Below are positions 3,871-58,242 of a stretch of DNA of 64,000 nucleotides, one piece after another. Position 1 is the stretch's first letter; each line of letters opens with the position of its first letter. The stretch comes from Cyanophora paradoxa CCMP329 (taxonomy: Eukaryota > Plantae > Glaucophyta). Position numbers and translations under genes: made by a program. Under the pieces are notes generated by a model that worked only from the letters and a program-made list of their open reading frames with translations, did not search any database and was not told the origin of the DNA. The stretch spans positions 62,001 through 126,000 of the forward strand of contig QPMI01000459.1 of NCBI GenBank assembly GCA_004431415.1, in the 5' to 3' direction.

Positions 3871-3912
3871 GGCTACCGTAGCACCGTACTAGTAGTCACT
3901 TAGTCATGATCA

Positions 3913-5601: not shown

Positions 5602-5662
5602 TACATCATCAGCCTACATCCGATCATCATGGATTCATGGCTACATGATCAACTTATAATTA

Positions 5663-5914: not shown

Positions 5915-6463
5915 TACATGACTCAGTGATGGCAGACATTGGCAGCAGCTGCACAGCCTGCAGTGGCCCTGCACTGCGGGAGGCTGCAGCTAGTGCTTGC
6001 ATGGGGCCTTCCTTTGAATCATTTCTAAAACAGGGCCGGGCCCCAGCACAAAAAAAGTACCCGAAATTCAGACTTTTTCATGGGAATCATGGCCGATGAG
6101 GAACCGGCCGGGTTGGAAGCCGGTTAAAAAAACGTTTGAAATGGTTTGGTTGTAAAAAAAACCGTTAACGCGCATGTGCGTCGTGCACATACTGCAGGGT
6201 CCGAACCGGTTTCAGGTTCTTCATTCGCTTTGGGTGGAAGCTCTAAGTACTTGAGAGCCGAACGGCCTCCTATGAGCAGGGCGCCGGCGAGCCCTAGCCT
6301 CTAGGGAGGCTGAGGTTGTCCGAGCCGAAGGGCGAGTCTCGAGTCTCGATCGCGAGCTTCGTTGGAAAAACGCAAAACAACTTGAAAATTGAACTCGGGC
6401 CAATCGTGATCGACTTGCCGTGAATTGCCGAGACGCTGAATTCGGCAATTTAACGACTCGGCA

Positions 6464-16935: not shown

Positions 16936-18690
16936 CTAGAGCTCGGTATCCCACGGCTCGGCCGCCGCGTCGGCGTCGCCCTCGGCCCACGGGGCGCCGC
17001 CCTCGGCCGCGAACTCGCCCCCGCCCCCGCCGGCCGCCGCCATAGGGGGGTCCACCACCACCGCCTCGTAGAGGTCGTACCCCTCCTCCGACGACTCCGC
17101 CTGCGGCACCTGCCCCGCCCCTTCCCGTCAAGACGAGAGGGGGTACGGGATGAGTGGGGAGGGGTACGGGCCTCGTTGACGGTGCGGGTGCTGCCCGAGG
17201 GGGCCGGCTTCAGCAGGGGAAACATATTGCCCTCCTCGTAGAACGCCTGCATCCGCTCCAGGAACTGCGGGACGGGGGTAGATCAATGGCATGTAAGCGG
17301 TGGGGGGGTACGGGACCGGGGGCGGACCTCGCCCTTGGAGACCCAGCCGTCCTGGCTCGGGTCGAACAGGGGGTAGTATGCGTGCAGCTCCTCGGTCTGG
17401 AGGGGTATGAGATAGGACGCGTGAACGAGGGGGTACGGGAATGGAGAGTGGTACGCACGAACTGGCCCAGGTGCAGCTCGCGCTCGAGAAGCATCGCGAT
17501 CTGTGGGGGTACACGGTTCGCGCAAACGAGCGGCGGGCCGGGGTACGGGCGCGCACCTTGATGAGCTTCATCTGCCCGAGCTTCTCTTTGTCGTAGGCGT
17601 CGTACGCGCCCAGGACCTGAGGCGAAGTTAGAGGAACGGGACACGACGAAGAGGAGGAGGAGCGGGGGCGGGGGCGGGGGGGCGGGGTGGGCCTTGTCCT
17701 GGAAGGCCTTGACGGTGATCTCGTCGCCCTTGCCGTACGCCTCGTTCGGGTCCTCGATCGACGCCCGCATCTCCGCCTGGGGTACGTGTCAACAAGAAGG
17801 CGGGAAGAAGAAGAAGGGGGGCGGACCCAGGGTCGGCGGCGTTCTCCATGACGAGCTTCACGATCTCGGCGTGGATGATGTGGCCGGTGCCGTTGAAGTC
17901 GAGGGCGCGGGCGACCTCCTCGAACTTGAGGTTGCCGTCCCGGTTCGTGTCGATGAGCGCCAGGAACGCCGGCGAGACCTGCGCCAAGAAGAAGCTCAGG
18001 CGGGCACAGATCTATCTATCTATCTCTTGCAGAGACAGACAGGCGGAAAAAGAGCACCTTCTCGAGGACGGGGAATGCGGCCTTCAGCTCGGCCTTGGAC
18101 GCGAATCCGTCCTTCGAGCGGTCGATCACCTCCATCACCTGCGGGGGGCAACAGTCTCAGACGAGGGCGGCGCGGCCAAGGGCGAAGCCTCTAGATCTTT
18201 CCTCTAGATCTTTCCTCGCCGGGCGCGCCCGCCGCGTTTCAACGCCGCCGGGCCGCCTCGAGCTCACCCAACGTCTCAACTCTAGATCTTGCTCGGCCTA
18301 CCGACCTTGTCGCGATCGAGTGCCCCTCCCCCGTCGCAGACTTTGGCTAACGTTCAACGGCCAATTATACACGGATCATGATCATATAACAGATTATATT
18401 ATAACGGAGACTTCGGCGTCGCAGATTATATAACAGAGCTACGTATATATATATACGTATGCAGCAGCTTATAATTAAGAAGTCTCATTACTACAGCTCC
18501 ACGCCCCAAAACGTCTCTCTCTCCGGGCCCAGCTGATCATGAACAAGGCGAGCGGACCTTGCAATTGTCGTCGAGAACCCCGCGGCCGGCCTCGGCATAG
18601 ACGTCGACGTACGCGTTGCCGTCGTTGGGGTCGAGCGCGTCCACGGCGATGATTCTCGATCGCGAATTCGAATTGCACGCCGCAATTGGG
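16936..18690 (-). pseudogene. Chimeric partial EF-hand gene copy (3' exons from the intact gene, 5' part from the decayed copy)
   Basis: 16936-18084 matches 27083-28230; 18085-18690 matches 686-1290. Confidence 0.85.
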
Positions 18691-21600: not shown

Positions 21601-24600
21601 TGGGCCGGGCTACCGTAGCACCGTACTAGTAGTCACTTAGTCATGATCAGTCGGGAGTCGGGACTCGGGAGTCGGGACTCGGGAGTCGGGACTCGGGACT
21701 CGGGAGTCGGGACTCGGGAGTCGGGACTCGGGACTCGGGAGTCCGACGGTCGGGAGTCGGGACTCGGGATTAGAGCTGTGCTCGCTGGGGGGGGCCGGGC
21801 CCAGCGGCCGCTGAAGCCCGGCGAGCGGCGCCCGTCGCTGGCCCGTCGCTGAGGTGGGGGTACCGCCAAAACCTGTCGAAAAACTGCTGAAAACCAACCG
21901 AAAACCTATCTGTTCCGTTTAGTTTATTTCGTACAAGCTTTTAAGATGCGCGCGTACGCAAATGCAGATTTAATGCTTAGTTCCGCGAGCCATCTGTCAA
22001 TTTCTGCGAGATAGAGGCCAGCTGCAGGCTGCTTTTGGGCGAAGCGAAGCGCCTGGATGCTCGAAAACAGTCGAAATTTAGCAAGATTAACAACGCCGAC
22101 CTACGTCGACCTTCAGATGAGAAAAAAGCGGGATGGAGCTTTTTTTGGCGCCTGTCAGCCATAAAAAACGCTGAGCGAGGAGGTGTCGCTGGCGGAAAAT
22201 GCCAAGCGTAGCGGCCGCTGGAACCTCGCGAGCGAAGCGACCACCAGCGACCACAGCCCTACTCGGGATCCGGGGACCGGAGTACGTGCCTAAACGTTTT
22301 TTTTGAAAGGGCCGATGGGCCACTGGGCCAGCATAAAACAAATTAAACGAAGTCAGTGGCGACTCGGCGTCGGCGACTCAGTGCAAGTCACCCGTGTACC
22401 GTAGTACTGTACATCATGGCATGTGCATGTGCATTACCCCCAAATTGAAAACCCGCACCATTGGTCCATTAATATTACCCACCCAAAAAACGGTCCATGC
22501 CAGCCTCAAACTTTTTGACCTTAAAACGCTTTAATTAAATTTCAAGAAAATTCAAGTTTGATGGGGGATCCGCGGCCGGAACTTTGACCTTGGCAAGTTA
22601 ATGGCAACTTGCATAAAGTTGCATTGGCAACGTGTTGTTTTTTATCAAGCGCTCACTGAGTCAGCCTATCATAGTATGGCAGTGGCAAATCCACTGGCAA
22701 TTGCAATGGCAGCTCACTGCCGTCAGCGGCGGTCAGCCTACTACTAAGTAGCCTAGTAGGCTAGCTGCCGGCGTGCCGCAGTGCACTCAGTGACTGCGGC
22801 AATGCAGCGGCATCAGGCTCAGCGGCTTCCATGATTAGTTCCATGAACTTCCATCATGTTACCGTTTGAACGAGATTAAAACTTACATGATCGATCATGC
22901 TACTGTAATTCGGGTAATATTTAAGACCCCAAAATAATTAGTAATCCCGGGGTTTGGTCGGTTTAGAAGGCTGAAAATAATTAAGAGTTGGCCGCGCGGA
23001 GCGCTTTAGTAGCGGCCTTTAGAAGGGGGTGGGCGCGGCGCGCGCGCCAGGGGTTTAGATCTGTCGGAGCGTCCGAGAGCCCCCTCACACTATAGCTATA
23101 CAGCTAGCTTCTCCCGCGCTGCAACTATGGCTGCGCTACGTACCCCCAGCACCTCAAGTTTAGTATACGATAAAACTTTAGTAGTCGGGCCTCAAAACTT
23201 TGGTACTATAAAGATCCAGTATACTAAATATTTCCCGACTTACAGTACATCATCAGCCTACATCCGATCATCATGGATTCATGGCTACATGATCAACTTA
23301 TAATTACCGTAAAACACTTGATTAATGCGCCCGATATTAATGCGTTTTTGGATCGACCCGGACTCCTCGTACGGGAAATAATGCGCCCCCAAATTAATGC
23401 GTTTTGGAGATTTCCGCCTGCGTTAGGGGGGTACATACCGCAGTTTTCTTAGCGTTTCGATATTAATGCGCCCCCCAATTAATGCGTTTTGCCAGCAGAA
23501 AACGCATTAATTAGGGGGCGCATTAATTAAGTGTGCGCATTACTTAAATGTTCTACGGTACATGACTCAGTGATGGCAGACATTGGCAGCAGCTGCACAG
23601 CCTGCAGTGGCCCTGCACTGCGGGAGGCTGCAGCTAGTGCTTGCATGGGGCCTTCCTTTGAATCATTTCTAAAACAGGGCCGGGCCCCAGCACAAAAAAA
23701 GTACCCGAAATTCAGACTTTTTCATGGGAATCATGGCCGATGAGGAACCGGCCGGGTTGGAAGCCGGTTAAAAAAACGTTTGAAATGGTTTGGTTGTAAA
23801 AAAACCGTTAACGCGCATGTGCGTCGTGCACATACTGCAGGGTCCGAACCGGTTTCAGGTTCTTCATTCGCTTTGGGTGGAAGCTCTAAGTACTTGAGAG
23901 CCGAACGGCCTCCTATGAGCAGGGCGCCGGCGAGCCCTAGCCTCTAGGGAGGCTGAGGTTGTCCGAGCCGAAGGGCGAGTCTCGAGTCTCGATCGCGAGC
24001 TTCGTTGGAAAAACGCAAAACAACTTGAAAATTGAACTCGGGCCAATCGTGATCGACTTGCCGTGAATTGCCGAGACGCTGAATTCGGCAATTTAACGAC
24101 TCGGCAATGCTGCTGGGGGTAGGTATTTTCCTAGCCCGCCATAGAGCAAAATCTGGATTCGGCAATTTATCGCCACGGCAATTCCGGTTTCGGACGAAAT
24201 CGGCAATTTTTCGCCTCGGTAATTTTCCGCCTCCTACAGTGTATGTGTTATTTCCACGCCTCTCATAATGTATACGTATACGTAGAGGCTGGTAGAGCCC
24301 CCGGCCCTCTAACAACATTTAAAGCGGGTCTGGCGGGCGGGAATTTATGCCTTTAAATTAACGCGGTGTGATTCCGGCCGTGTGAACCAAATTAACGCGG
24401 TGTAACAATTTTGGGCTTTTATGGGGCGGTAATTGTGGCAATGGGGGGCACTATATACGTATGGACCAACGTAGCTGTAGAGAATTAGCGCGCGCGGCAT
24501 GCGCACCAAATTGACGCGATGAGTCCAAACTTTGGCGCGTTAATTATAATTTGAGACCGACTTAATTAGCTATAGGTGAGCTATGTATATATGTATACCG

Positions 24601-27600
24601 TAGTACGCCGTGACGCATCGCACGGACTGCGGCGCCGGCACGGCCCGGCGGTGCGCTGCCGTGCGCATATGCGCATGCCTGATCATGACAATGCGCCTGT
24701 AAACGTAATACGTACCAGTATATCTGACATTGCCTGTAAACGTAATACGTATATCCGTCCTATATATATAGCTATCTCATGATCAGTCTACTAGGCTAGA
24801 CTCTGGATATTGCAGCTGCAGCTGCACTGCGGCAGACATTCCAGTCGCTCTCAACTTGCACGGTTCAGCGTCGCCGTTTCTCGGCGAGCTAGCTATAGCC
24901 GATCGCGTGAACGCACATCATGTCCAGCTCAGGCAGTTCTATCGATATCCCGGTGTTGCAGGCTTGGGCAAATTTCCTCATAAACAATGCGGTCTCGCTC
25001 CCCGAATACCCGAACATCGCAGCGGTTCGTGCCTTGATAGGCCTAGGCCCGTGCCGTGTAGTGCAAATCTAGATCTAAGATGATATTGCGGCGTACGCGC
25101 TAAAACCGTACAGTCCTCAAGGCTTTGCAATGGAATGCCGTGGCTTACGGGGGCGCTTTTGGACAGTTGGTCAAGCCGCTGGGACTTCCCGACCAGGTCG
25201 ATGAATCCGCTGTGCGCGACACTCATTCCCGATAAAGCCATGCCGGGCATGCCGGCCTAAATCACGGCTTGCGATCAGGTAAACGACGTGATGAACAAGG
25301 TGAAGGAGGCATTTGACGCACTTCCCGATGACCAGAAATCGCTCGTCCAGGGCGAGTTTGAGGTGAGTGAACAGCAACCCTCATGCGCGTCAACATACTC
25401 GAGCTCGGCCCGAACTGATTGTACGCGTACATCTGCACGTCGGAGCTCAGGCTGCTCTTGATGCTGTGACCCCTCCGATCGAGACGGGCGTTGAAAACCC
25501 GGAGGAGCTCGTCAACGCGGTTGGCTCGTCGGCTCTTCTCGAGGTTGCAGTCGCGAACTTCATCACAAACCACATAGAAATGCTTGCCGGGCTCCCGAAT
25601 CTCGCCGCGGTGCGCAGAACGCCTTTCTCATGCTCTGAAGTACTAGTCTATAACATAATATAATATGTACCTGAATTTAAAAAGCCGCCTTGAATTCAAA
25701 TTCTCTCTGACTTGCTATGCATATGTATATGGCGGCACGTGCACGCATGCGCAGTTGATAAATTCGGTCACGATTCCGGAAGTCATTGACGCGTCCAACG
25801 TGAGCCGGCTTACCCCGGAGACGGAGCCCTGAAGTTGCCAGCAAGTACTCACGATTATCTATGCAGATCGACGAGGTCGTGAAATCTGTCAGCGAGGCTT
25901 ACCTTTCGCTGTCGGCAGACCAGCAGGCTGAAACGTACAACGAACTGGTGGTCAGCACGCATATGTTCCCCCCTGCCCCTCCCCTTTCTCCGACGCGTCG
26001 CCGACTTAAGCTCACCGCTTTGCAATTGGCCGCGTGCATGTGCAGGCTGCGCTCGCCGCCGCCGCGCCGGCGATTGAGGAGTCCGTGGAACAGAACTCGG
26101 ACCCGATCACGAGCGTCGTGGAGGGGGATGCCTCCTACAGCTATGGCTATGGCTTCGACGACGACCTCGACTATCTGGAGGCCAGCCTCGCGGCCGAGGC
26201 CGACGCCGCGGCCGTCGCCGACGGTGACGCCTTCGATTTCGGCGGCTTCTGAACATTGAGCGGCGTCCCGCGGTCGCTTCGAATCAGCGCTCTCCAATGA
26301 TTGTCGCTCCGGAGAGAGTCCGCCTGTCGATGTCGACGGATCGTCGGACTTGTCTTGCAGTACCAGTCTTGCATGACTCGATGATGAAACAATTATGAAA
26401 ATGCCCATGCTTGAAATTTAAAATGAATCCGACTCCCGGAGTCCACGGGGCATTTCTTTCCTCCACTCGGCACTCGCTCTCGGAGTCCGGATATCGATCC
26501 CCATGCATGCATGTGCATGAACGCTGACCGCTCAATCGCACCATCGTGGGCGGTTTGTTAATGTTCGTCGGTTCACATAGTCCGATGTCTCTATTTACAT
26601 GGGGATTCCTGGGCTTAAGCTTCAAACCTAGGAAGGAGAAAGGGAGAGACGGGTGCAGAGACGAACTATAATCTAATTATAAACCATGGCCAGTTGCAAA
26701 ACCATGCGCATTATTTATATAGTATGAGCATGCATGTCAAGCTAGCGCTCCGGATCCCGACTCAGACTTCGGCGACGTCGACTTTATTTTGGACGGTGAA
26801 CGCCGCGGCGGCGCCCCGCAGCAGCTGCGCAGGGCGTGAGACCGGGCGGGGGCGGGGGCGGGGGCGGGGTACGGAAAGTGGGCGGTGCGCTCGGCGGGGG
26901 CAGCGGGGGCGGAGCGCCTGGGCGGGAGGCCGGCGCGCGTGTACCTGTGCCTGCCCTCGCCCGTGCTGGGGCCCTTCTTCTACGCCCAGCCCCTCCGGCC
27001 CACCCCCCTCGGCCCAATCGAATGTGCAGTGATGGTGTCACGTTAAACGTTGTATTGCAAAAATAGCGGCGGCGCCCTGCATCTAGAGCTCGGTATCCCA
27101 CGGCTCGGCCGCCGCGTCGGCGTCGCCCTCGGCCCACGGGGCGCCGCCCTCGGCCGCGAACTCGCCCCCGCCCCCGCCGGCCGCCGCCATAGGGGGGTCC
27201 ACCACCACCGCCTCGTAGAGGTCGTACCCCTCCTCCGACGACTCCGCCTGCGGCACCTGCCCCGCCCCTTCCCGTCAAGACGAGAGGGGGTACGGGATGA
27301 GTGGGGAGGGGTACGGGCCTCGTTGACGGTGCGGGTGCTGCCCGAGGGGGCCGGCTTCAGCAGGGGAAACATATTGCCCTCCTCGTAGAACGCCTGCATC
27401 CGCTCCAGGAACTGCGGGACGGGGGTAGATCAATGGCATGTAAGCGGTGGGGGGTACGGGACCGGGGCGGACCTCGCCCTTGGAGACCCAGCCGTCCTGG
27501 CTCGGGTCGAACAGGGGTAGTATGCGTGCAGCTCCTCGGTCTGGAGGGGTATGAGATAGGACGCGTGAACGAGGGGGTACGGGAATGGAGAGTGGTACGC

Positions 27601-28230
27601 ACGAACTGGCCCAGGTGCAGCTCGCGCTCGAGAAGCATCGCGATCTGTGGGGGTACACGGTTCGCGCAAACGAGCGGCGGGCCGGGGTACGGGCGCGCAC
27701 CTTGATGAGCTTCATCTGCCCGAGCTTCTCTTTGTCGTAGGCGTCGTACGCGCCCAGGACCTGAGGCGAAGTTAGAGGAACGGGACACGACGAAGAGGAG
27801 GAGGAGCGGGGGCGGGGGCGGGGGGGCGGGGTGGGCCTTGTCCTGGAAGGCCTTGACGGTGATCTCGTCGCCCTTGCCGTACGCCTCGTTCGGGTCCTCG
27901 ATCGACGCCCGCATCTCCGCCTGGGGTACGTGTCAACAAGAAGGCGGGGAAGAAGAAGAAGGGGGGCGGACCCAGGGGTCGGCGGCGTTCTCCATGACGA
28001 GCTTCACGATCTCGGCGTGGATGATGTGGCCGGTGCCGTTGAAGTCGAGGGCGCGGGCGACCTCCTCGAACTTGAGGTTGCCGTCCCGGTTCGTGTCGAT
28101 GAGCGCCAGGAACGCCGGCGAGACCTGCGCCAAGAAGAAGCTCAGGCGGGCACAGATCTATCTATCTATCTCTTGCAGAGACAGACAGGCGGAAAAAGAG
28201 CACCTTCTCGAGGACGGGGAATGCGGCCTT
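18085..28230. repeat. Tandem segmental duplication, copy B (includes a 331-bp insertion)
   Basis: Near-identical to copy A; contains the empty sites at 22555-22562 and 24091-24106. Confidence 0.95.
20048..20378 (-). mobile_element. 331-bp poly(A) retroposon with structured 3' module
   Basis: 15-bp TSD GCCTACACGATACTT at 20033-20047 and 20379-20393; T-run 20046-20053; empty site at 2643-2657; 3' module shared with 53746-53853. Confidence 0.92.
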
Positions 28231-31096
28231 GAGTTCGGCCATGGACGCGAATCCGTCCTTCGAGCGGTCGATCACTTCCATCACCTGCGCGGGGTACAGT
28301 CTCAGACGAGGGCGGCGCGGCCAAGGGCGAAGCCTCTTTCCTAGGGCCTGGCGGGGCGGGGCGGGGCGAAACGCAAGGCATGCCTTGTAGGCGGCGACGT
28401 CGGCGGCGTTCTCGAAGACGCGGGCGATCTCCGACGCCGACGTTGACTTGTCGCGATTGTAGTCCACCTGCGCGGGGAGGAAGGGGGAGGAACGGGGTCA
28501 GGTGACCATGGGCGGGTAGGTGGGTGGGGCGGGGACGGCGGGAGAGGGGAGGGGGAAGGGAGGAGGGGGTGCCCGTCGCGTCCCAACGGCGCCTCGCCCA
28601 CCCCTCGGCTAACAGGGGCCCTTCCCCCGTCACAGACTCCGGCTAATGGCTATCGGAGCTACAGCGGCTTAAGAGCCAGCGAGCCGGCCGGCCAGCCAGC
28701 GAGCCGGCCGGCCAGCCAGCGAGCCGGCCGGCCAGCCAGCTAGCGGAACGAAGCGGGGCCAAAAGCGAGGCGGAGGGGCCAGAGCTTCGCTCCGGGCCCG
28801 GCCAAAGCCTTGAACCGACCTTGTCGAGGACCTCGGCCTCGTAGGGGGAGGAGGGGGGGGAGGGGGGGGAGGGGACGCCCGCCGCACCCCAACGGCGCCC
28901 AGCCAAACGTCTAAAGCTACTCTATCTCCAGGCCAGGCCCCAGGCCCCAGGCCCCAGGCCCAGGCCCCAGGCTCCAGGACGGACCTTGTCGAGGACCTCG
29001 GCCTCGTCGTAGGCGTTGTCGTCGTTGGGGTCGAGCACGTCCGCGATGATCCGCGACTTGCACGCCCGCGCCACCTGGGGGAGAAGGGGCGGGGGGCGGG
29101 GGGTGGGGGGTCAGCGCGGGTGGCGTCTCCTACCCAAGCCTCTCCTACGCCCCGCCCCACCCCGCCGGCGCGGGGCTACTACGGAGGAGGGGGCGGGCGG
29201 ACCTCGGGGAAGGCGACGGCACCGTCGTGGTTGGCGTCCAGGTACGCCATCAGCTGCCCGGGCTCCAGCTGCGAACGAAGCGCGGCGCGGGTGGGGCGGG
29301 TGAGGAGGCGAGGCCAAGGCAGGGGCGACGGGGGGCTTCTTCGTCCTCGAGACGGGGCAGCAGGCAGATAGATAGATAGGTAGATAGATAGATAGATAGA
29401 TAGATAAGTCACGACGGGGCGGGCAGATAAACAGAGGGACAGGTAGGTAGACAGGCTGATAGGTGGATGGACGGGGCGAGTGGAGGGACGGGCGGGGCCG
29501 CGGCGGAGCTAGCCGGACCTGGCCGCGGAGGATGGCGAGCTCCTCGGGGCGGGCCTTGAGGGCCATCTCGCGGGAGACCACCAGCACCTCCTCCGGCGTC
29601 ACAACCTGGGGGGCGGGGGGGGGGGGGGGGGGGGGGGGGGGGGCGTCAGCGGAGGGAAGGGGGGGAGGTTTGCGATCCGACCGAGTCTAGCCCGCGCCGT
29701 CTTCTCATCTATCTGATCTATCTAAGAGTTCTGAGATCTATCATCGGATCTGCCCGCCTCTCGTCTGCACCTGGTCGCGGGAGACGTCCGCGAGGAGTCT
29801 TATGGGTTATGATCTATCTATTTAAGAGTTCTGAGACCCATCTAAGAGCTCTAACCTGGTCGCGGGAGATGTCGGCGAGGCGGGCGAGCTCGCCGAGGGT
29901 AACCTCGCCGTCCCCGCCCGCGTCCGCCAGGCCCGCGAAGTCCCCGCCCAGCACCGCCGCAACCTGAAGGGGGGCGCGCGCATCGGATGGGAGGGGCGGG
30001 CGGGGGGCTTGGAGGGGCCACAAGAGGCTGGATTTCGCATTAGATTACTGGGTCTTATGGACGGTTGTGTTTATGTTAGATAAGAAGTCGGCTGGGCGAA
30101 CGGGGCCGGACCTCGCCGGTGGCGAGGCGGCCGTCCCCGTCTGAGTCCAGCGAGGCCATGATCTCCCCGGGCGAGTACGCCCCGTCCCCGTCCCCGTCCC
30201 GCATAGGGCCCTCGACCGCCGCCGCGCTCACGGGCGCCGCCACGGGCTTCGGCGGCGGCGTCGCGTCCGGCCGCCCCTGCTCTGGCTCCGGGTCCGGCGC
30301 GACGACCCGCGCCGGCGGCGCCGCCGTCTGGCTCTGCTGCACGCTCTGCTGCACGCGGGTGGGCATGCCGGGGGCCGTGGAGACGAGCGGGGCGACGAGC
30401 TCCATCCCGGGCGGGAGGTCCGGCGGCAGGTCGAGGTCCGCGAACGGCAGGTCGTTGTAGATCGAGGCGCCCTCCGTCTGGAGGCTCACCGTCATCTGAG
30501 CCCGCCCGGATCAAATTCGGATCAAATTCGATTTCAAATTCGGATCAAATTCGGATCAAATTCGGACCTGGGCCGGGGCCTCGAAGACGACGTCCTTGGG
30601 CATGCGGATGCTCTGCACGCGGCCGGCCTCCTCGACCGGCGTCCGCGTGGGCGCGTCCTCGATCTTGGCGGCGCTCGCCGTCTCCGGGTTGAGGTGCCGC
30701 GTGAAGACGGCCGGCTTGGCCAGCGGGTCGAAGATGTAGGCGTCGCCCGGGTCCGCGGGGTCCGCCGGCGGCTCCGAGAAGCTGCCCTTCACGACCGCCT
30801 CGTCGATGCGCTCGCCGCCGGGCGCCGTATAGGCGGAGGGCGTCGCCTTGGGCGGCGCCAGGGGCGAGGGAGAGGGCGACGGCGTCCCGGCCGGCGCGTT
30901 CGTCACGATCTCCTGGAACCAGTCGGCGGGGAGCGCCCAGCTCATGTCCGCGATCGGCAGCGCCGTCGCGAAGGAGAGCTCCTGGAGCTCCTGCACGGCA
31001 GAGTCCAGCATCTGCGGCGACGGCGCGGTTTGAACGCGGGCGAGCGGGCGCGAAGGAGCGCGGCGCGCTCCGCCGCCGCCTGCGGACCTTCATCAT
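27083..31096 (-). CDS. Multi-EF-hand calcium-binding protein with Pro-rich N-terminal region and C-terminal DTEL (~16 exons; 5' end uncertain)
   Basis: EF loops DGDGDGAYSPGE, DSDGDGRLATGE, DANHDGAVAFPE, DPNDDNAYDEAE, DRSKDGFASMAE, DTNRDGNLKFEE, DPSQDGWVSKGE; stop at 27083-27085. Confidence 0.8.
28673..28740. repeat. Intronic 20-bp tandem repeat (GAGCCGGCCGGCCAGCCAGC), ~3 units
   Basis: Direct reading. Confidence 0.85.
29366..29406. repeat. Intronic (GATA)n microsatellite
   Basis: Direct reading. Confidence 0.9.
30507..30565. repeat. Intronic 11-bp tandem repeat CGGATCAAATT x5
   Basis: Fills most of the ~70-bp intron. Confidence 0.85.
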
Positions 31097-32568
31097 GTGG
31101 CCCGAAGGCTCGGCAGTGGGCTGCGCCATTCCGGCCGCGTCCTGCCGGGGCGCGTCGTTGGCAGGGCGCGGGCCTCGTGGGGCGAGGCGGGACGGACCAC
31201 CGGCGACGGCGGCCGCCGAGGAGTGTCAGGAACACGAACTGCGCCGCCGCGCCGCTCCACAGACTCGGTCGGCGCCGGACTCCGTTGGACTGCGTTCGAT
31301 ACGTTAGCCATGAGCCCTCGCTCGTCGCGGCGCGGGACGGCGGCCAGTTCGCTAGCGAGAGCGGTCTCGGCCAGGAGGGCGGAGGCTATGCACCTCCGCT
31401 CTCTTCGGAAGGTGCGGTCGGGATAACGACGATGACGGGTCTGCACAGTAATAGTCAGCTCGCTGATGCATCCAAAAGCGATTCGGGTGCAATCAAGGTG
31501 CCAGCGACGCGCCTGGAAGACTCCTGCCTCAAACCCGGCGTGGCGGAGCTGTACCCCCGCCTGGCTTGCACCCCCTCTGCAGCTTCGCCGTTTCCGTGTT
31601 CACGTTGATTAGACGCTGGAAGCATTGGCTGCAGCTCGGTGAGGCGGTCGCCCGCCCCCGCAGCTGCCCCGCGGCATGATGGCGATGAGCCCGGCACCGC
31701 CCGCTCGCATGAGGCTGCGGCGGAGCGCGGGAAAGTGCGGGAATTCGGTGCGTTTGATCATATTCTCCCGGCAAGCTCGAATGCGCAACGGCAGCTAACC
31801 GGGATGCCCCGCGGGGGCCGGGCCGGTCTCGCCAGGCCCTGATCGACGCACGGAGCTTAGCTAGGATCGACTGGGGCGGCCTGAGGCTCGCTCTGGCAGC
31901 TTCAGTGACAGAAGAGGTCGGGGACGAGGGCAGGCCCGTCGAAAAGGCGCCAGAAACCTCGCGGACAGGCTCGAGCGGCCGCGGGCTCACGAGGCTCGAG
32001 GCCGGCTCGGGCCACGCGCCCCGCGCAAGCTCGCCTCAGCCTCCCGATCGCTCATCGGAGCTGAGGCATTCGCGCACGGTGACACCGCGCGCCGGCGCGG
32101 CCGGGCCAAGCGATGCCCGCCCCGCCGGGGTTGACGTCACCGCCCCGGGCTCGCCCGGACCCAGCGCGCCGACGCCTCCGCCCGGCCGCCCGCGCGCCGC
32201 GAGCCACCCCTCGATCACTCTCCACTACGAGCCGCTACTAGACGACGCAGCTGCAGACGGGGACAGCGCGGTGCCCGCCGCCGTCTCGGGCCCCAGGAAA
32301 CCCGCTGCCGCTCACGCGCACCGTCCCGCAGGGCGGGCCGGCCCCTCCCGTCGCCCCGCCCGACTCTGAAATCACTCTGGCAAATCAAACGGAGAGCGGC
32401 GGCGGGCCCGCCCGCCGCGATCCGCCCCGGCGGCGGCCGGCGCGGCGGCCGTCGCTCCCGATCCCCGCGGCGCCTCTCTCTGCGACGGCGCCGAGGCCGG
32501 CGAGCCCCCAGCGGTCCGCCCCGTACCCTCCCCGGTTCTTCCCCCTCCCTCCCCCGACCTCTCGGCAG

Positions 32569-34468
32569 GTATCCCCCTGGAATCGCTCCCCGACGAGCTC
32601 CTCGCGCGCATCGTCGACGAGGCGCGTACCCCCCCCCCCCCCCCACCACCACCCGCCTACCCAGCTGATGCGGCCGGGCGGGGCAGGTCGGGGTGGGCGA
32701 CGCGTACTTCGGGCGGTGCCGCCTGCGGAGCGTCAGCCGCCGCCTCCGGAGCGCAGTCGCGGCGCTCGAGTGGGGCGCCCTCGACGCCCGCGCGGACCTC
32801 CGACTGGGCGGCCGCGGCGGGCCCGGCTGCGTCCCCGCCCTCCTCCGCCTCGCCTCCGCCGGAGCCTTCCGCGGCGCCCGATCCCTCCGCCTCGCCCTCG
32901 CCCTCGACCGCTCCGCCGCCGCACCGGCCCGCGCCCTCCACCGCGCGGCCGCTGCCGCCCGGGACCTCGCCGCGTGCCTCGCGGCGCTGCCGGCGCCCCC
33001 AGCGCGGGCCGCCCTCGCGGTGGGGTCCTGGCCGGCGCCGGCGGAGCAGCGGGCGGCCGGCGTGCCTGGCCCCTGGGTAGGGCCCTGGTCCGCCCTCGCG
33101 TCCCTCCTCGCGGCCCTCGCGCCGGCGCCCCTCTCGGACCTCGAGCTGACCGTCGCCGGGCCCGCCGGCGGCCCCGCTCCGCCCTTCCCATGGGGCCCCT
33201 GCCTGGCCCCCTTCCCCTCCCTCCTCCGCTTCTCCCTCTCCTGTACCCCCGACGAGGCGGCGGCCGCCGCCGAGGCCCTCGCGGCCGCCTGCCCGGCCCT
33301 GCGCTCCCTGCGCCTGCCCTCGCTCCCGCCGGCCGCCGCCGAGGCCGCCCTGCGTCTCCCGCTCCTGGAGGCGCTCGAGGCTGGGCCCGAGGGCCCGCCC
33401 CTCGCCGCCCCCGCCGCCCGCGCCCTCGCGGGCCACCCCTCCCTCCGGCGCCTCGCCCTGGGCCCCGGGGCCGACTCGCCCGACGCCCTCGCCGCCCTCG
33501 TACCCCTCCGCCTCGCCGGCCTCGCCCTGTCCCCCTCCCGGGCGCGCCCGCCCGCCCCGCCTTAGGCCCTCGCCCCCGTATCCCTCTTCTCCTCTCTCGA
33601 GCACCTCGAGATCTCGGTGCGCACCCGGGGCGTACCCGGGGCTGCTTCTCCCCCCTCTCTTCTTTAATCGTGTACCCCAGTTGGACCAGGAGAGCGCGGC
33701 GGGCGTGGCGGCGCTGGGTCGCCTCCCGCGGCTTGCCTCGCTGGCCCTCGGCCTCATCTTCAGCCCGCGCGCCGGCCTCCCGCCCGGCCGCCCCGCCCCC
33801 GCCGCCCCCGCCGAGCGCGCCGCCCGCTTCCGACGGCAGCTCGACGCCCACGCCGAGGCGCGTACCCCGCCCCCGCCCCCGCCCCCGCCCTCGCTCACGC
33901 CCCGCGCAGCTGCTGCGGGGCGCCGCCGCGGCGGTCGCGGGGCGCCAGCCCTGCGGGCGGTGGAGGTGGATCTGTACCCCCGCGGGGCCCCGCAGGACGG
34001 GGCGGCGCTCGCGGCGCTGGCGGCGGCGGCCGGCGGGCGGCTGCGCGCCTGGCGATACCGCGAGCGAGCCGGCGGGCCGCCCTCCGCCGCCGAGACGGCC
34101 GCGCTGGCGGCGGCGGCGGTGGCGGGGGCGGCGGCGGCGGCCCGGGGCGGCCCCTCGACCTTCGCCTCTGGCACTCGGCCGGCCGCCCCCTCGCCCTCCC
34201 CGGCGCCCCCGCGGACCCAGGCGCGCTCGCCGCGGCCCTCGAGGGGTACGCCCCGCTGCGCGCGCTGCCGCCGGGCGCCGGCCGCTCGGCGCGGCTGCTG
34301 GTCTACGGGGACGCGGCGGCGGCGGCAGCGGCGGCCGCGCGTCTCGCCGCCCTCCTCCCCGCCTTCGCCGCAGTTGTCTCCCAGCGGGCCCCGCGGGCCC
34401 TCGGTCTCATCCCCCCCGCCAGCCCGGGGCCCCTGCCCCCCCTAGCAGAACTTGGCCCCGCCGCCTGA
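32569..34468 (+). CDS. F-box / leucine-rich-repeat-like protein (start uncertain)
   Basis: PLESLPDELLARIVDE | VGVGDAYFGRCRLRSVSRRLR resembles an F-box split by an intron; followed by LxxLxL repeats (LSDLEL, LRSLRLP, LRRLALG, LASLALG). Confidence 0.6.
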
Positions 34469-37440: not shown

Positions 37441-37512
37441 TACAACCGGTAGCTAATATAGTATCCGATGATAGTCGCATGCCATGATGCGCATGCGCAA
37501 GTTAGCTTTGAT

Positions 37513-38554
37513 ACCCAAACGCCCGCGCCCCACGACCCCTCCCCTTCCCGCCCCTGCACCCGCCCCCCCCGCACCCACGGCGAAAAGAAAGGCAACCGGT
37601 CGCAAGACCCCCAAGCGCGGGACCAAAAAAGCGCGAACGGTGCCAATACCTGCGGGACAACCCACAATCACGTCCCTCTTCGCACCCGGAGTATACAGAC
37701 CACTCACGACGCTGCAAGAAACTGACTCTCCCCCCTCCTCCTCGCTCCAGCTGCCTTCCCCGACCGGGACCCCGCGCGAGGCCGCCCCTCCGCCCCCTCC
37801 GGCCCCTCCCCCGACCCCAATCAACCCACAAATGTCGGACCCCTCGCCCACCCCGACCACCACTATGGCTTCGGCCCCCCCCTCGGCTTCGGCCACCCCG
37901 CCGGCTTCGGCCCCCCCCCTTGGCTTCGGCCACCCCATCGGCCCCGGCCACCCCCCTGGCTTCGGCCATCCCCCCTACTCCGACTGACCCCTCCCGACCC
38001 CTTGCGACCCGCTTCATCTCCGCACTCCCCGCTCTCTGCGCCGCCTGCCAATGCCCACGCTCACTCCACACTGCTGTCCCGGCACCTCTCCCCGCCCTGC
38101 CCCGCATCCGCTGCCCACCCCCTACCGCTGCCTCCGTATACTCCCTCTCCTTCCTCATATCTTCCTCCTACCACCTTCTTCACCTTGACAAAACAGGACA
38201 CCGTTTAATCGGGGTCTTGGGGCGCAGGTGAGGAGGAGGGAGGCGGCAGAGTGAGGAGGAGGAGGGGTGGCGGAGCGGCGGCAAGGGCGGGCGGCGGACT
38301 GCGAGACATTTCACTTCCAGGGCTCATGAGGGATGGAGGAGACGATCAAGGGGTGGGCGCGCGGGTCTGGTTACGGCTATCACCGAAAACCAAGGCTCCC
38401 CCACTCAGGCGAACCTCCCATATTGAGCGACCCATGGCCGGCACCTAGCTAGCATCTTCGGCTAGATAGATGACCGGTCGGAAGGGCGCGTCACGTAGAA
38501 CATTGATACATGTGCCGTGGTGTATCAATGCGACGTCCACTTCTGCAAAAAAAA
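37513..38554 (+). mobile_element. 1042-bp 5'-truncated poly(A) retroposon carrying a Pro/Lys-rich ORF end
   Basis: 18-bp TSD GCGCAAGTTAGCTTTGAT at 37495-37512 and 38555-38572; A8 tail 38547-38554; 10-bp hairpin 38501-38530. Confidence 0.88.
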
Positions 38555-39244
38555 GCGCAAGTTAGCTTTGATCATGAGTCGCCGAGTCGCAAGTCCCGGA
38601 GTCCGACGGTCCGGATCTGGCGATCAAGTCGCAAAACAAGTGACGCTTGGCGAGTCCCGAGACTCGGACCGGGCGCCGGCGGCCCGGCATGCGGCCATGC
38701 AGTGCCAGGCTGCCAGCAACTGCGCATGCCAGCCAGTGCCAGCACTGCCAGGCTGCCCAGGCAGCAGGGCCGAGCAGGCCCAGGCTGCCGCGGCCAGCAG
38801 CGTTCCGGCGGCCCGCGGCGGGTGGGCCGGACGGTTAACGTTCGGACCCGGCCGGTAGTAGGCCCGGTACTACGGTACTAGTAGTACCGGTATACGTACC
38901 GGACTTCTACCGGTACTGTACTAGTAACTTCGACTGCCCGCCCCGGCGCCCGCCGGCTTTAGTGATCCCTTCGACTGTTCTTTTGCCTGCGCATGCACTT
39001 GATCCGCTTGATCCGCCTTCTGTGTCCTCCTCGTGCTGTAGCTCTCGATCTGTTCTTTTGCCTGTAGCTTCGAATTCCCCGCCGCCCTCCTACCGGCAGC
39101 CCCGGCAGCCCCGGGCCTCTAGATCTAGATCTGCCCCCCCGTCCCCGCCAGCAGAGGATGACTGCGCCCCGCTCAAATATTCGATTCCGCGCAACACATC
39201 TGAAGCCGGATTCAATGTACACGTCGAATTCGAACTCGCTGAAC

Positions 39245-51266: not shown

Positions 51267-52005
51267 GCCTGAGCTCGGATTGCGATCGGGGTTTGAGCTC
51301 GCCGGATCGAACGAGCTCGATCGAGCAGGAAATTGAAAATTGGACTTTTTCAAGTTTCTCCGAAATTCTCGAGCTCCTGCGTGCCTAAATTTTCTCCTCT
51401 CGATCGCGAGCCCTAGCTATCTATAGGCCTGGCCTAAATTGTCTCCTCTCGAGCTCTCATGATCAGTCTATACTGTACGCAGTGCGAGCTCGATCCACTT
51501 TGCTACGCAGTGCGAGCTCTACGTATACTATGCGGGGATGCTTCGCGCCGCCGCCCGCCTGCACGCCCGCGGGGCTGCAATCATGATCGCGAGCGATGCC
51601 GCGGCCGTCTCATCGGCAATCGCGAAATCGAAATTCACAGCAGCGACTCGAGCTCCGGCCATCGATCGTGGCGGCGCGAGCTCATGCGGATGCAGGAGGA
51701 TTTCGCGGCTCCCGCACCCTCGCGATCGGCGCCGGCGCCGGCCGCAATGAGGAGGATCGGGGCTCCGGGCGCGGGGCGCCCCCGCCCCGCCTCGAATTCC
51801 GTCTGGTTCCATCGCTGGCCCTCGGCATCGGGGCTGCGGCGTGCACCTTCGCGGCTGCGGAGGACGCTGAGGCGCTTAAGCCTAGTAAGGAGGAGCCAGC
51901 GCTGGCGCCGGGCCCCGGCCCGTACGCGTGCACGTGGAGCTCGGCGTGCTAGTAAGCTCAGCCTACCAAGCTGGCCGAATATTAATTATGCTTTATATAA
52001 GTATT

Positions 52006-52084
52006 ATTTTGAGAGACTACGTACGGTGGGGCGAATTTAAACCCCCCGCGGTCCCCCCACGGGCCGTATACGTAGGTGGTGATT
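52006..52084 (-). mobile_element. Decayed relative of the 4826-4908 retroposon
   Basis: TTTTGAGAGACTAC[GTAC]GGTGGGGCGAA[TTTAAA]CCCCCCG...TAGGTGGTGAT aligns with 4830-4872. Confidence 0.75.
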
Positions 52085-52086
52085 CC

Positions 52087-53284
52087 ATGGCCATGAACCG
52101 CGACCTGCGCGCCCGCTTCCCCAACGCGCAAGGCTGCCTCGCCGCCGTTGAAGTCGACCTCGGCAACCCGAACCGCAAGCTCAAAGTACGCCTTATGTAA
52201 ACTGTGCAATTGAGCGAAGTCTCAAAACGCGAGCCCGGGCCGGGACGTAGGTCCGCATCTGTCAGGACCTCTCGGTTGCGAGCCGTCAGGCGGTGTACGC
52301 CGGCCTCACCCCGGAGCAGCAAGCCGAGGGCCTCTCCTACCGCATCTTCTGCGGCATCCAGGGCGTCTACACGGACGACGCGCTCACCGCCATGTGCCAG
52401 GTCAGCCCCGGGCCCACCCGGGCCCCAGTGGGGGCCCATAAAAGGAACTTAAAAGATAACGCCACCCCGCGCGCGAGCGCTGGACTAAACCTCTGCCCCC
52501 GCAGGCGGTTTGGCTCGAGCCCGAGCTCTTCGACGGCAAGATCAAGGTCGTGAACCTCACGGCCCTGCAGCCCCACAAGTACAAGCGTGACGGCGACAAC
52601 ATCGCCATCGTCGGCAAGGAAGTGAAGCCCGTGCTCGACGCGGACGACTCCGAGGACGAGGACCAGGAGGTCCGTACCCCCCCTCGCCCCCGAGGGACCC
52701 TGTACCCCCCCTGACAGAAGGCCCACCCGACAGTCGCTCTACCCCGACTCGCTGGCCCTGGCGGCCTCCGAGACCAGCGCGAAGGTCGTCACGGAGCACC
52801 GCATCCACTACCCCAACGGGGTGGGCGGCCGCGCCTCGTACCGCCCCGGCCACTCCACCACGGCCCGCCGGCTCAACCGCCTCAGCGCCCTCAATGAGGG
52901 CAAGACTAACGAGGAGGCAGCCAAGATCGCGGCGGAGATCGCCGCCAAGTCTCGCAAGCGCGCGGCCGCGCACTTCGGGCCCGACGCGCGCAAGAAGAAT
53001 AAGGGCGGCGCCGCTGCCCCCGCCGCCCCGGTTGCCCCCGCGCCCCACCCCGCCGCCGCCGCCGCCGCGGCGGCCGCCGCCGCCGCCCCGCGCCGATCGC
53101 CGCCCCCGCGCCCGCCCCGGGCCCGGCCCCGCCCCGGCCCGCCCCGGCCAACATCACGCTCGCCAACTACCAGGCCACCCAGAAGCTCCTCACCGAGCTC
53201 ACGGCGGCCATCGGCGGCCCCGCCGCCGTAGAGGCCTACCTCGCCGGCCGCCGCGCCGCGGCGGCGGACAACGCAGCGGCGTAG
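52087..53284 (+). CDS. Unknown protein encoded by the retroposon (4 exons; possibly 5'-truncated)
   Basis: Exons 52087-52185, 52290-52400, 52505-52669 and 52734-~53284, joined in frame by phase-0 GT-AG introns. A probable indel lies in the GC tract before ANITLANYQATQKLLTEL...*; without it the stop is at 53231. Confidence 0.7.
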
Positions 53285-53745
53285 ACTCTCTAGGACCCTC
53301 CTAGAGTTGGGGCCTCCGGCCACCCCCTTTCTCTCTTTCTTTTCTCTTAGTCAATCTCTCTTTCCAGAGCGGCCATGAGGCCTCGCTACACCTAAGGGCG
53401 CGACACTTAGCTGTCATGTATGCTTGATGAAGCAATGCCAAGGCGCGCGCCCAAGACCCCCGACCAAGCCACCCCCGCCACTCGCCCCGCATCTTAGCTC
53501 CGGCCCCGCAGGGCCCCCACCTAGCCCGTGCTCACCCCTCTCTTGCGTACCTAGCCCCATCCCGGCCACCCGGGACACCCGCCCCGCGCCCCGCATGCCG
53601 AAAGATAGGGGGATGTGCAACCGCCCTAGGCCTGTACTACCCCCCCACCCCACCCCACCCCCCCACCCCCCCTAACAGACTACGCCCCGCCGACGCGAGC
53701 CCACGACGGACACCCCGCCAAGCTCCCCCCCCCCCCCCAACACTG

Positions 53746-53897
53746 AACGCTTCTAGTTAGCGTCGAAGCGCCTATCCCTGTGTGCCGGCCACAGGTTATG
53801 AGCTGACCCAGAGTTCGGCCTAGTCCGAACCGGTAGTGCATACGATGAAGTCAGTGGTCTGAGAATAAAACAAACGCCCAAGAATTGGGCTATCCTG
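53746..53897 (+). ncRNA. Conserved structured 3' RNA module of the retroposon family (minus-strand homolog 20054-20204)
   Basis: Stems ACGCT/AGCGT, CCTGTG/CACAGG, GTTCGG/CCGAAC and a terminal GCCC/GGGC, retained in both copies. Confidence 0.6.
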
Positions 53898-54012
53898 AAA
53901 AAAAACGTAGGTGGTGATTTATAGGGTAGCTATAGGTACTATAAAACCGTATACGTATTCGTACTATACTATGATATATACCGTAATAAACAATATCATG
54001 ACAGGCAAATTT

Positions 54013-57000
54013 ATTTTCAGGCTTGTAGGGCGGTAAATTGGGGGGATACCGCGGTCAGCACCGCCCGATCGCGAAGAAGGAGCGGAAGCAGACAGGTAAG
54101 CGGAACAACAAGACGACGTGGAGGCTGAGGCGAAACAGGACGATGCGAAAGGGCAGAACTACGACACGAGCGCGAGGAGGACACAGAAGACGGATCAGGC
54201 GGATCAAGAGCAGGCAAAAGGACAGTCAAAGGAATCACTAAAGCCGGCCGTGGTCGAGGCGGGCAGTCGAACTGCAAACGACGGCGAACGACAGGCCGAA
54301 GACGAGGACTAGCGCTGTAATTAATTCTAGCTGTAGCATCGACACTACGATCAGGATCCGAACCAGACCGAAGTAAACTACAAGACAGACTCTGAGAGAA
54401 CGCCGGCGCGGCGGGATATATATACGACGGGCGAAGCACAGCGGCAGACGACAAAGCCAGAGGCTGCGGCTCCGTACCAGAACAAGCTTACGGGACGGAG
54501 GGCCTGGTCCAGCAAACCGACGGAGCCTCGGAGGATCCAGAAGGAGACGCAGGCTCGGCAAGCCGGTGACGGGTGCGACCACGAGTCCGGGAAGAGATCG
54601 GGGAAGAGGTCCCGGAGCTAAGGGCCCGAAAGCAGAGGCAGAAGGCAAGCCCGGCGAGAAATCAGACCCGGAACCGGAACCCAGCGAACGGCGACGACGT
54701 CGACGAAGAGGCCCCCGGGGGGGCATGGCCAATTGCAAGACGGGGGATCCGGAGCTACCGAGCAAAGAAAGCACTGACAACCGGCGTCGAGCACGGCGGA
54801 GGAAGTACCTCGCGGTCGCGATCGTAGACAGCGGCAGACGGAGAGCTCGAGTCCAGGGTCGAGCTAGAAACCCGACGACGGGAACGCGACGGAGGCCTAG
54901 GCCTACGGGAAGGAAGAGGCGAGGTACCTCAATTGTCTACCTCAATAGTATGTAAAAGCAATGTTTTAATGTTGAATAAACGTTGCCCTGGCGGGCCTGG
55001 CCTAGGAGGCTAGGCCTGAATGAGGCTGAATCAATTATCAATCAGTGCCGCGTCAACATCGAAGTTTCGCGCTGTGACTTCAGTGACGCAGCTGCGACTC
55101 CTGCGAGCGCCGAGCGCTCGAGCCTCGACCGGGGTGACGCCGCCGTCACGCCAGGGACCCGACTCGGCGGGGATCGGAGTACTGCTGGCCCTATATTACT
55201 AGTACTGTAGAACTAGTTAATTTAGTACAGGAAAATAATTAGTACTTCGCGAAAACTGCCACTTTAGCAGCTAGTAAATCTTAGTAGGTCAGTCTGCGCA
55301 GGGCTTTTGTATGGCGGAGACGGGACTACCCCTACAAATTCTCGCCTTTCGCAGGCGGGAAATATTTAGTAGATCGCCCAACTTGGCGCGGGCCAAAAAC
55401 TTTTAGTACTATAAATATGCAGCCCACTAAATATTTCTTTAGCTTGCAATTGGCCGGGAATTTGGCCCTCAAGTAGGGCACTGGCGGGCGGCCAACTTGG
55501 CAAGCCAGCTAGCTAGCCGGCCAATTTGGGCGGGGGGCGCCTGCAGCTGCAGGCTGCAGCGCTAGCTGGGCTAGCTACAGGCGACCAAAATCCCGGCTAG
55601 TGCTTTTCGACGGCTGGCAAGCCAACTGCCCATGGCCAAGCTGAAAGCCAGACCCAAAGCCCCCCTTTTTCTTCCCGTGGAAGGGGTACTCAAAGAGGCA
55701 GATTTGATAAAGCGCTAGCTCAATCTTGAATATTAATGTAAAGCTCGAGCTTAATGTACGGCTTAAAAAGCCGTCCTGCAGTACTCGAGACCGGGCCAGC
55801 TAGTCTAGCTGGGCGGCCTGGCCATGCATATGGGCCCTGGGTCGGGGCCCTGGGGGCCTGGCCCACCTGGGGCCAGAGCCGCCAGTGCCCGCCACTGGCC
55901 CGCCAGACCCCTACCGCCGGGCCGCGCCGGCTACCGTAGACGACTTAAATACCGCGCCACATATTACCGCGTTCTAAAATTTCGGCGCCGGTATGCGCTT
56001 TACCGCGCTACCAAATTACCGCGTTCCATCGTCTTCGAAAATGTATTATTTGTTAGCAAAGGGGGTAATTTTGAGCGCGGTAATTTGGCAGCGCGGTATT
56101 TAAGTCAGCGCGGTATATAAGTCGTCTACGGTACCGGTACTAAGGTACGGCGGTACCCTCAAAGTTCCAACAGTTACCTTGTGGACCCGGGAGCTGAGGG
56201 AATTTGGGGGGGGGGGAACTGGGGGATACTATGATACCGGCTCGTTGCCAAAGTCGTTGGTCACGGTTGGTGGCAACTTGCAATTAAGTTGCAACTTGCC
56301 AAAAGTTGCGATTGCCGGCAAGTTGCGGCGGCAACTTGCCGGCAACGTCCCCAAATTGTATCGGCATGAAATTTTCAGGCTTGTAGGGCGGTAAATTGGG
56401 GGGATACCGCGGTCAGCACCGCCCGATCGCGAAGAAGGAGCGGAAGCAGACAGGTAAGCGGAACAACAAGACGACGTGGAGGCTGAGGCGAAACAGGACG
56501 ATGCGAAAGGGCAGAACTACGACACGAGCGCGAGGAGGACACAGAAGACGGATCAGGCGGATCAAGAGCAGGCAAAAGGACAGTCAAAGGAATCACTAAA
56601 GCCGGCCGTGGTCGAGGCGGGCAGTCGAACTGCAAACGACGGCGAACGACAGGCCGAAGACGAGGACTAGCGCTGTAATTAATTCTAGCTGTAGCATCGA
56701 CACTACGATCAGGATCCGAACCAGACCGAAGTAAACTACAAGACAGACTCTGAGAGAACGCCGGCGCCGGCGGGATATATATACGACGGGCGAAGCACAG
56801 CGGCAGACGACAAAGCCAGAGGCTGCGGCTCCGTACCAGAACAAGCTTACGGGACGGAGGGCCTGGTCCAGCAAACCGACGGAGCCTCGGAGGGATCCAG
56901 AAGGAGACGCAGGCTCGGCAAGCCGGTGACGGGTGCGACCACGAGTCCGGGAAGAGATCGGGGAAGAGGTCCCGGAGCTAAGGGCCCGAAAGCAGAGGCA

Positions 57001-58242
57001 GAAGGCAAGCCCGGCGAGAAATCAGACCCGGAACCGGAACCCAGCGAACGGCGACGACGTCGACGAAGAGGCCCCCGGGGGGGCATGGCCAATTGCAAGA
57101 CGGGGGATCCGGAGCTACCGAGCAAAGAAAGCACTGACAACCGGCGTCGAGCACGGCGGAGGAAGTACCTCGCGGTCGCGATCGTAGACAGCGGCAGACG
57201 GAGAGCTCGAGTCCAGGGTCGAGCTAGAAACCCGACGACGGGAACGCGACGGAGGCCTAGGCCTACGGGAAGGAAGAGGCGAGGTACCTCAATTGTCTAC
57301 CTCAATAGTATGTAAAAGCAATGTTTTAATGTTGAATAAACGTTGCCCTGGCGGGCCTGGCCTAGGAGGCTAGGCCTGAATGAGGCTGAATCAATTATCA
57401 ATCAGTGCCGCGTCAACATCGAAGTTTCGCGCTGTGACTTCAGTGACGCAGCTGCGACTCCTGCGAGCGCCGAGCGCTCGAGCCTCGACCGGGGTGACGC
57501 CGCCGTCACGCCAGGGACCCGACTCGGCGGGGATCGGAGTACTGCTGGCCCTATATTACTAGTACTGTAGAACTAGTTAATTTAGTACAGGAAAATAATT
57601 AGTACTTCGCGAAAACTGCCACTTTAGCAGCTAGTAAATCTTAGTAGGTCAGTCTGCGCAGGGCTTTTGTATGGCGGAGACGGGACTACCCCTACAAATT
57701 CTCGCCTTTCGCAGGCGGGAAATATTTAGTAGATCGCCCAACTTGGCGCGGGCCAAAAACTTTTAGTACTATAAATATGCAGCCCACTAAATATTTCTTT
57801 AGCTTGCAATTGGCCGGGAATTTGGCCCTCAAGTAGGGCACTGGCGGGCGGCCAACTTGGCAAGCCAGCTAGCTAGCCGGCCAATTTGGGCGGGGGGCGC
57901 CTGCAGCTGCAGGCTGCAGCGCTAGCTGGGCTAGCTACAGGCGACCAAAATCCCGGCTAGTGCTTTTCGACGGCTGGCAAGCCAACTGCCCATGGCCAAG
58001 CTGAAAGCCAGACCCAAAGCCCCCCTTTTTCTTCCCGTGGAAGGGGTACTCAAAGAGGCAGATTTGATAAAGCGCTAGCTCAATCTTGAATATTAATGTA
58101 AAGCTCGAGCTTAATGTACGGCTTAAAAAGCCGTCCTGCAGTACTCGAGACCGGGCCAGCTAGTCTAGCTGGGCGGCCTGGCCATGCATATGGGCCCTGG
58201 GTCGGGGCCCTGGGGGCCTGGCCCACCTGGGGCCAGAGCCGC
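54013..58242. repeat. Tandem duplication, 2358-bp period (54013-55882 = 56371-58242), second unit cut off by an LTR element
   Basis: Near-identical sequence; part of it is related to 38955-39090 on the opposite strand. Confidence 0.93.
55934..56131. mobile_element. Tc1/mariner-type MITE
   Basis: TIRs CCGTAGACGACTTAAATACCGCGC / GCGCGGTATATAAGTCGTCTACGG; TA TSDs. Confidence 0.88.

Follow-up and report, generated by a model that had tools for sequence, protein, structure and literature searches.

A 1,820-bp insertion in the genome of the glaucophyte alga Cyanophora paradoxa, at positions 52085–53904 (+) of the 64-kb stretch of DNA analyzed here (the window), bears the marks of target-primed reverse transcription (TPRT), and yet the gene that it carries still holds introns. 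We put at roughly 0.6 the probability that this unit is a young, dead, 5'-truncated and frameshifted copy of a C. paradoxa retroposon family, copied unspliced by a LINE enzyme. That such a family, copied from unspliced RNA, exists is plausible but unproven, judging from the sequences compared here. We hold a more specific version tentatively, at somewhat less than even odds: a LINE-dependent, poly(A)-type family that spreads as unspliced RNA, keeps its intron positions across subfamilies that are 30–38% identical, and makes an orphan protein of ca 640 residues from spliced RNA. The initial annotation of this DNA had proposed a gene-carrying retroposon with introns. The sense-strand gene does hold introns and lacks reverse transcriptase (RT) and endonuclease (EN), whereas the completeness of the unit and the helper role given to its protein did not survive the analysis.

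The unit is enclosed in full by a perfect 15-bp direct repeat, ACGTAGGTGGTGATT, which constitutes the target-site duplication (TSD). The left copy lies at 52070–52084 (+), with GTAT just before it, and the right copy at 53905–53919 (+), where it adjoins the A tail. This tail is short, with seven A on the sense strand (53898–53904) and an eighth (53905) common to tail and duplication, and an AATAAA (53864–53869, +) is found 28 nt upstream of it. Both the duplication and the tail had been noted in the initial annotation and are borne out. The whole window was scanned for exact direct repeats of 15–25 nt with a spacing of 0.3–5 kb. Among the roughly ten repeats that are not of low complexity, three enclose A-tailed insertions, namely 52085–53904, a short element near 20 kb, and 37513–38554. 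The 64-kb window holds no empty site for the 1.8-kb unit. With a TSD, an A tail and 5' truncation each present, 52085–53904 has the marks of a TPRT-type insertion.

A further mark of TPRT named at the outset, a 3' block shared with a second insertion, is also present. The 3' UTR of the unit (53285–53897, +) has a GC content of 0.63 and contains C-runs, and homology to the short element near 20 kb covers its last ~220 nt. The conserved part, 53758–53856 (+), is 90% identical to 20094–20192 (−) over 99 nt. The sibling that carries it is a 331-bp insertion at 20048–20378 (−) with a tail of seven to eight A, and its 14–15-bp duplication (20033–20047 and 20379–20393) differs from the ACGTAGGTGGTGATT repeat. 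The sibling is a proven insertion, because a paralogous unit of a 10.1-kb repeat holds its empty site (~2643–2660), where the duplication sequence is single. A weaker similarity between the 3' end of the 1.8-kb unit and the sibling, 71% over 229 nt, makes the two related beyond the 3' block.

We have also considered the 3' block as a structured RNA. The sole structure common to both blocks is a 6-bp hairpin, GUUCGG/CCGAAC, in a comparison of two sequences from which covariation cannot be judged. A stable fold was rejected, the folding energy being no better than that of shuffled sequences (z = +0.43 and −0.21). No match to the block was obtained in a metagenome scan, no tRNA was found in the short element 20048–20378, and the Rfam scan of 51500–54500 (E ≤ 1) gave no match, including to the hammerhead ribozyme. 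It can also be noted that GTAT(A) stands directly before both insertions with the block, at 52066–52070 and 20393–20397 (−), which in these two cases hints at a common endonuclease preference.

We now consider the gene inside the unit. The exons were translated and searched singly, while database gene models were used for the steps that involve whole proteins. The first coding segment, 52087–52185 (+), has 33 codons, corresponding to residues 295–327 of P0014, a 642-aa gene model on another contig; its ATG is internal and its GC3 is 0.88. It is followed by intron 1 (52186–52250, +; 65 nt, with an in-frame TAA), coding segment 2 (52251–52400, +; 50 codons, GC3 0.92), intron 2 (52401–52504, +; 104 nt, frame-shifting), coding segment 3 (52505–52669, +; 55 codons, GC3 0.95), intron 3 (52670–52733, +; 64 nt, with an in-frame TGA and a CTGAC 19 nt before the acceptor) and coding segment 4 (52734–53284, +), of which 52734–53000 is conserved and 53282–53284 is the stop. 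All three introns are GT-AG and in phase 0. None of their lengths is a multiple of three, and each thus breaks the frame if kept, instead of the two that had been counted before as breaking the frame or holding stops; the in-frame stops are in introns 1 and 3.

The exons display a strong coding signal (GC3 0.88–0.95, GC2 0.25–0.55) that is missing from the introns, and across the exon joins the alignment to diverged paralogues, at 32–46% identity, is free of gaps. The public gene model of this locus, P0001 (273 aa), connects the same exons and has the acceptor of intron 1 at 52250. The acceptor at 52289 given in the initial annotation was rejected, as homology to paralogues runs through 52251–52400, which aligns with P0007 (46%) and P0012 (41%). 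The 39 nt up to 52289 encode VRICQDLSVASRQ, which is part of the public model P0001, and it is because P0007 and P0012 have residues matching it that we place intron 1 at 52186–52250. The number and phase of the three introns and the limits of the second and third thus stand as annotated, whereas the end of the first does not. The C. paradoxa assembly has 67.6% GC and 9.2 introns per gene, with a mean intron length of 86 bp (PMC6704402), and lengths of 65, 104 and 64 nt are typical of the host by comparison with this mean. On these sequence grounds, we take the three interruptions, as far as the DNA shows, to be genuine spliceosomal introns.

It is important to realize that the unit is not complete. 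P0014 is 95% identical to it over the part in common, and the MAMNRDL with which the quoted protein had been taken to start is residue 295 of P0014, where it is preceded by ...HLTDIETS; the ATG is thus internal and the copy 5'-truncated. In tblastn, the alignment with P0014 begins at residue 294 and base 52084, where the duplication ends, which indicates a 1-nt microhomology at the 5' junction. What can be read in 52085–53904 is the C-terminal 55% of a protein of ~640 aa. The N-terminal 290 residues of P0014, a region that is kept between subfamilies (P0007 vs P0012, 33% identity), were not found anywhere in the window by tblastn. The copy is also frameshifted. A degenerate (GCC)n tract encoding Ala/Pro in exon 4 (53009–53149) introduces a net frameshift, and the conserved C-terminus, NITLANYQ...ADNAAA, follows in another frame at 53150–53281. 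This could be due to decay or to a long-read error. The models P0001–P0003 have a fourth "intron" that skips the tract. It was rejected as an intron; the predictor has probably bypassed the frameshift in this way, since P0005, P0008, P0014 and P0016 read straight through. The unit is not a complete gene-carrying element, and in this respect the initial annotation has to be revised.

An exhaustive phmmer search of 1.84 billion representative sequences gave 12 matches, which with their cluster members amount to 16 gene models on 15 contigs, every one of them from C. paradoxa (EukProt EP00741). They form three subfamilies that are 30–38% identical to one another. The N-termini of the models fall at many points of one coding sequence, while their C-termini agree. 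This is the pattern that 3'-anchored, 5'-truncated copies would give, the starts of the models being approximate; the models come from BRAKER1, and their authors state that curation is needed (PMC6704402). Several copies are frameshifted, including P0004, P0009 and the tail of P0014. The multi-copy family with variable 5' truncation that had been anticipated is recovered at the level of predicted proteins, in 16 models whose 5' ends are nested, whereas the unit itself is not one of the complete members.

The other members also bear on the introns. In subfamily B, a 39-aa in-frame insert is located exactly at the site of intron 2. Its first residue is V and its last Q, as expected from a GT...CAG segment, and a comparison of two copies gives ~45% identity, with indels, for the insert against ~88% for the exons on either side. 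In subfamily C, the break between two adjacent gene models falls at this site, the first model running on as V... and the head of its neighbor ending in ...Q. P0003 and P0005 share the acceptor at which they enter exon 4. As far as predicted proteins can tell, this argues against the other copies being mostly intronless.

Two further features of the gene models can be mentioned. P0005 (tig00020572_g11553) has a LINE RT fragment (RVT_1) joined upstream to exon 4 onward in the same orientation. This could reflect the nesting of one insertion in another, or a switch of template in which synthesis passed from the RNA of the retroposon to that of its partner LINE, and in the latter case the fusion would name that partner. 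The N-termini of P0014 and P0007 contain ITSFL and ITGYF, respectively, followed by a Lys-rich stretch, which is faintly reminiscent of a PIP box, with the leading Q not seen. Word-based protein searches with a 559-aa relative returned the query alone, and the gene model of 52085–53904 is unmentioned in the supplements of the Cyanophora papers that were checked.

As to function, the searches were blank throughout. Pfam gave no family for the exons or for P0001, P0006, P0007, P0012 and P0014, and it recognized none of the LINE ORF1 domains (Transposase_22, RRM, CCHC, esterase, PHD). No RT or endonuclease domain was detected by Pfam in the exons of the unit, in agreement with the initial annotation, and the 559-aa and 642-aa models have no RT. 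A PDB profile search yielded no relative (best E 0.14), the ESM Atlas no usable match (best score 0.76), and protein-guided scans of viral and metagenome contigs no relative. Structure prediction, which had been suggested as a check, was uninformative: the AlphaFold2 models are poor, with pLDDT values of 40 and 44 from alignments of 4 and 9 rows, and the best match in a VIA-align comparison with the PDB has a Z of 5.9 on a helical hairpin, which is at noise level. The family protein is an orphan, with no relative in Pfam, the PDB, the atlas or the viral sequences, and was found in C. paradoxa only. Because all these searches are blank, the "helper or ORF1-like protein" suggested earlier is a guess without support from any family, fold or structure match.

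It had also been suggested to look for a partner LINE that ends in the same 3' block, and none is found in the window. The sole LINE there, at 6464–13943 (+), is ~7.5 kb long and is a young insertion that splits one unit of the 10.1-kb repeat. Its duplication of 16–20 bp, ATTTAACGACTCGGCA, can be seen in the uninterrupted unit at 24091–24110. It has neither an A tail nor the 3' block of 52085–53904, and is not the obvious partner.

Other origins of the unit have to be weighed against the one favored above. It may be an occasional retrocopy of an orphan multi-copy host gene instead of a member of a dedicated mobile family. A SINE-like element would in that case reside in or just after the 3' UTR, or be acquired by a template switch of the RT, and an unspliced read-through pre-mRNA would have been copied by a LINE enzyme, that is, by 5' transduction. 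The similarity of the last ~220 nt of the unit to a separate short element fits this scenario, as do a protein without a TE-type domain and a full-length model with a normal-looking N-terminus. So do the other A-tailed retroposed units with unrelated tails in the window, from which it follows that a poly(A)-priming enzyme is active here. On the other hand, all three subfamilies include models cut at different 5' points, as in a transposable element, many copies are frameshifted (P0004, P0009 and the P0014 tail among them), and the junction of the 3' UTR with the SINE-like part displays no internal A-run or old duplication. We consider a host-gene origin unlikely. An ORF1-only deletion derivative of an autonomous APE/RT element, related to it as HAL1 is to L1, appears improbable. 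The joining of an RT fragment to the family gene in the same orientation in P0005 would agree with it, but this piece of RT is incomplete and lies upstream, as nesting or template switching would explain; ORF1-type domains were not detected, and the models of 559 and 642 aa are without RT.

Mobilization as a Penelope-like element (PLE) is suggested by the retained introns of 52085–53904, intron retention being the trademark of PLEs (PMC3846280, PMC8557442), and some gene models, such as P0011, suggest a head-to-tail arrangement. However, the window contains no pseudo-LTR and no inverted or tandem partial copy of the unit, 51500–54500 has no hammerhead ribozyme or other Rfam match, and the AATAAA, the A tail and the clean 15-bp duplication, together with a sibling that is a simple 331-bp insertion, point elsewhere; this origin was already disfavored, and we give it very little weight. 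Finally, in a window full of segmental and tandem duplications, the gene could in principle have been duplicated at the DNA level, with the 15-bp repeat arising by chance. Such a duplication was already very unlikely and is hardly credible, as the repeat adjoins the A tail exactly, the 5' edge lies inside a codon of a longer ORF, and this 3' end recurs in an insertion whose empty site has been proven.

For the retroposon family copied unspliced by a LINE enzyme, the following mechanism can be envisaged. A full-length master would be transcribed by RNA polymerase II and polyadenylated, and its spliced RNA would give the orphan protein. A LINE-type endonuclease/reverse transcriptase, supplied in trans, would capture the unspliced sense RNA by way of its 3' end and A tail. 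The enzyme, of the APE/RT type, would nick a GTAT(A)|A-like site, prime on the A tail and often stop early; in the case of 52085–53904, reverse transcription would have ended at codon 294/295 with a 1-nt microhomology. With unspliced RNA as the template, the introns would therefore travel with the element. To call the family non-autonomous is plausible, the full-length 5' part being known from gene models alone, and the 5' third of the full-length element could hold more coding capacity.

It is instructive to compare the unit with known systems. SINEs that share the 3' tail of a LINE, SVA and the ORF1-only HAL1 are LINE-dependent non-autonomous retroposons. The unit resembles them in its TSD, A tail and 5' truncation, in the lack of its own RT and EN in the part seen, and in a 3' end that is common to a short retroposon, and like HAL1 it carries a protein gene. 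Unlike in these elements, this gene is split by introns that have been copied along, and no relation of its protein to any ORF1 type could be detected. RNA-mediated duplication is classically recognized by the loss of introns, and retrocopies are counted on this basis. This hallmark of processed retrogenes is not seen in 52085–53904, where the copied part has kept each of its three introns. Semi-processed retrogenes, i.e. retrocopies with a retained intron, are more similar in that a polyadenylated, mRNA-like transcript has been copied with an intron inside. The unit differs from them in keeping all three introns of the copied part, in stemming from a multi-copy family of which many members are truncated, and in sharing its 3' end with a separate retroposon.

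With PLEs, and with host genes mobilized in trans such as an NRPS gene of Adineta vaga, the unit has in common that reverse-transcribed units keep their introns. The A. vaga gene is an intron-containing non-RT gene that is dispersed with target duplication (PMC3846280). PLEs are the only elements reported to keep introns after retrotransposition (PMC3846280, PMC8557442), a trait that the initial annotation had also associated with them. In contrast to PLEs, the unit has no pseudo-LTRs, no inverted partial copy, no 30–40-bp tail extension and no hammerhead, and it has an AATAAA and an A tail; the PLE clades Naiad and Chlamys are also without the hammerhead ribozyme. Retroviruses and some LTR elements resemble it in the division of labor proposed here, in which unspliced RNA would serve as the genome and spliced RNA as the messenger, but the unit has no LTRs and no gag/pol, and its insertion is of the TPRT type. 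If confirmed, the unit would work like a LINE-dependent gene-carrying retroposon such as HAL1, and yet keep its introns as PLEs do.

Should this be true, it would be the first case in which a retroelement that is not Penelope-like has been shown to disperse a gene with introns, and would provide a route by which introns and gene copies could spread in an intron-rich alga. The template choice of LINE enzymes would be broader than thought, including nuclear or unspliced RNA, and if a LINE-style glaucophyte family copies unspliced RNA, retrocopies in such genomes would be undercounted. A part of the 11.5% "unknown repeats" of the Cyanophora genome would also be explained, and the family would offer a natural system for the balance between splicing and packaging without the LTR-retrovirus machinery.

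The surroundings of the unit deserve some comments. The window is dense in repeats, with both segmental and tandem duplications. The ~10.1-kb tandem repeat occupies 1–28337, as 13944–24090, 24091–28337 and 1–6466, the last continuing into 13944. Its copies are 97.5–99.9% identical and differ by two young insertions, which provides natural pairs of filled and empty sites. Just downstream of the 1.8-kb unit, 54013–58242 is a tandem duplication with a period of 2,358 bp and 99.9% identity, whose + strand is purine-rich and has no long ORF. The third A-tailed retroposed unit, 37513–38554 (+), is 1,042 bp long and has a tail of eight A. Its TSD, GCGCAAGTTAGCTTTGAT, is a perfect repeat of 18 bp at 37495–37512 and 38555–38572, and its 3' end is unrelated to the 3' block of 52085–53904. 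It has an open frame in which a basic stretch is followed by QPTITSLF (~37658–37681), which looks like a PCNA-binding (PIP) box. Within the 10.1-kb repeat unit, a 14-nt minisatellite, (TCGGGAGTCGGGAC)n, is found at 3900–4056 and 21637–21793. The region 32001–34000 has 80.6% GC, with a strong skew of C over G and many (CCG)-type repeats, and runs of at least 20 G are located at ~18688–18709 and ~20317–20336, with a longer G-rich run at ~29603–29650.
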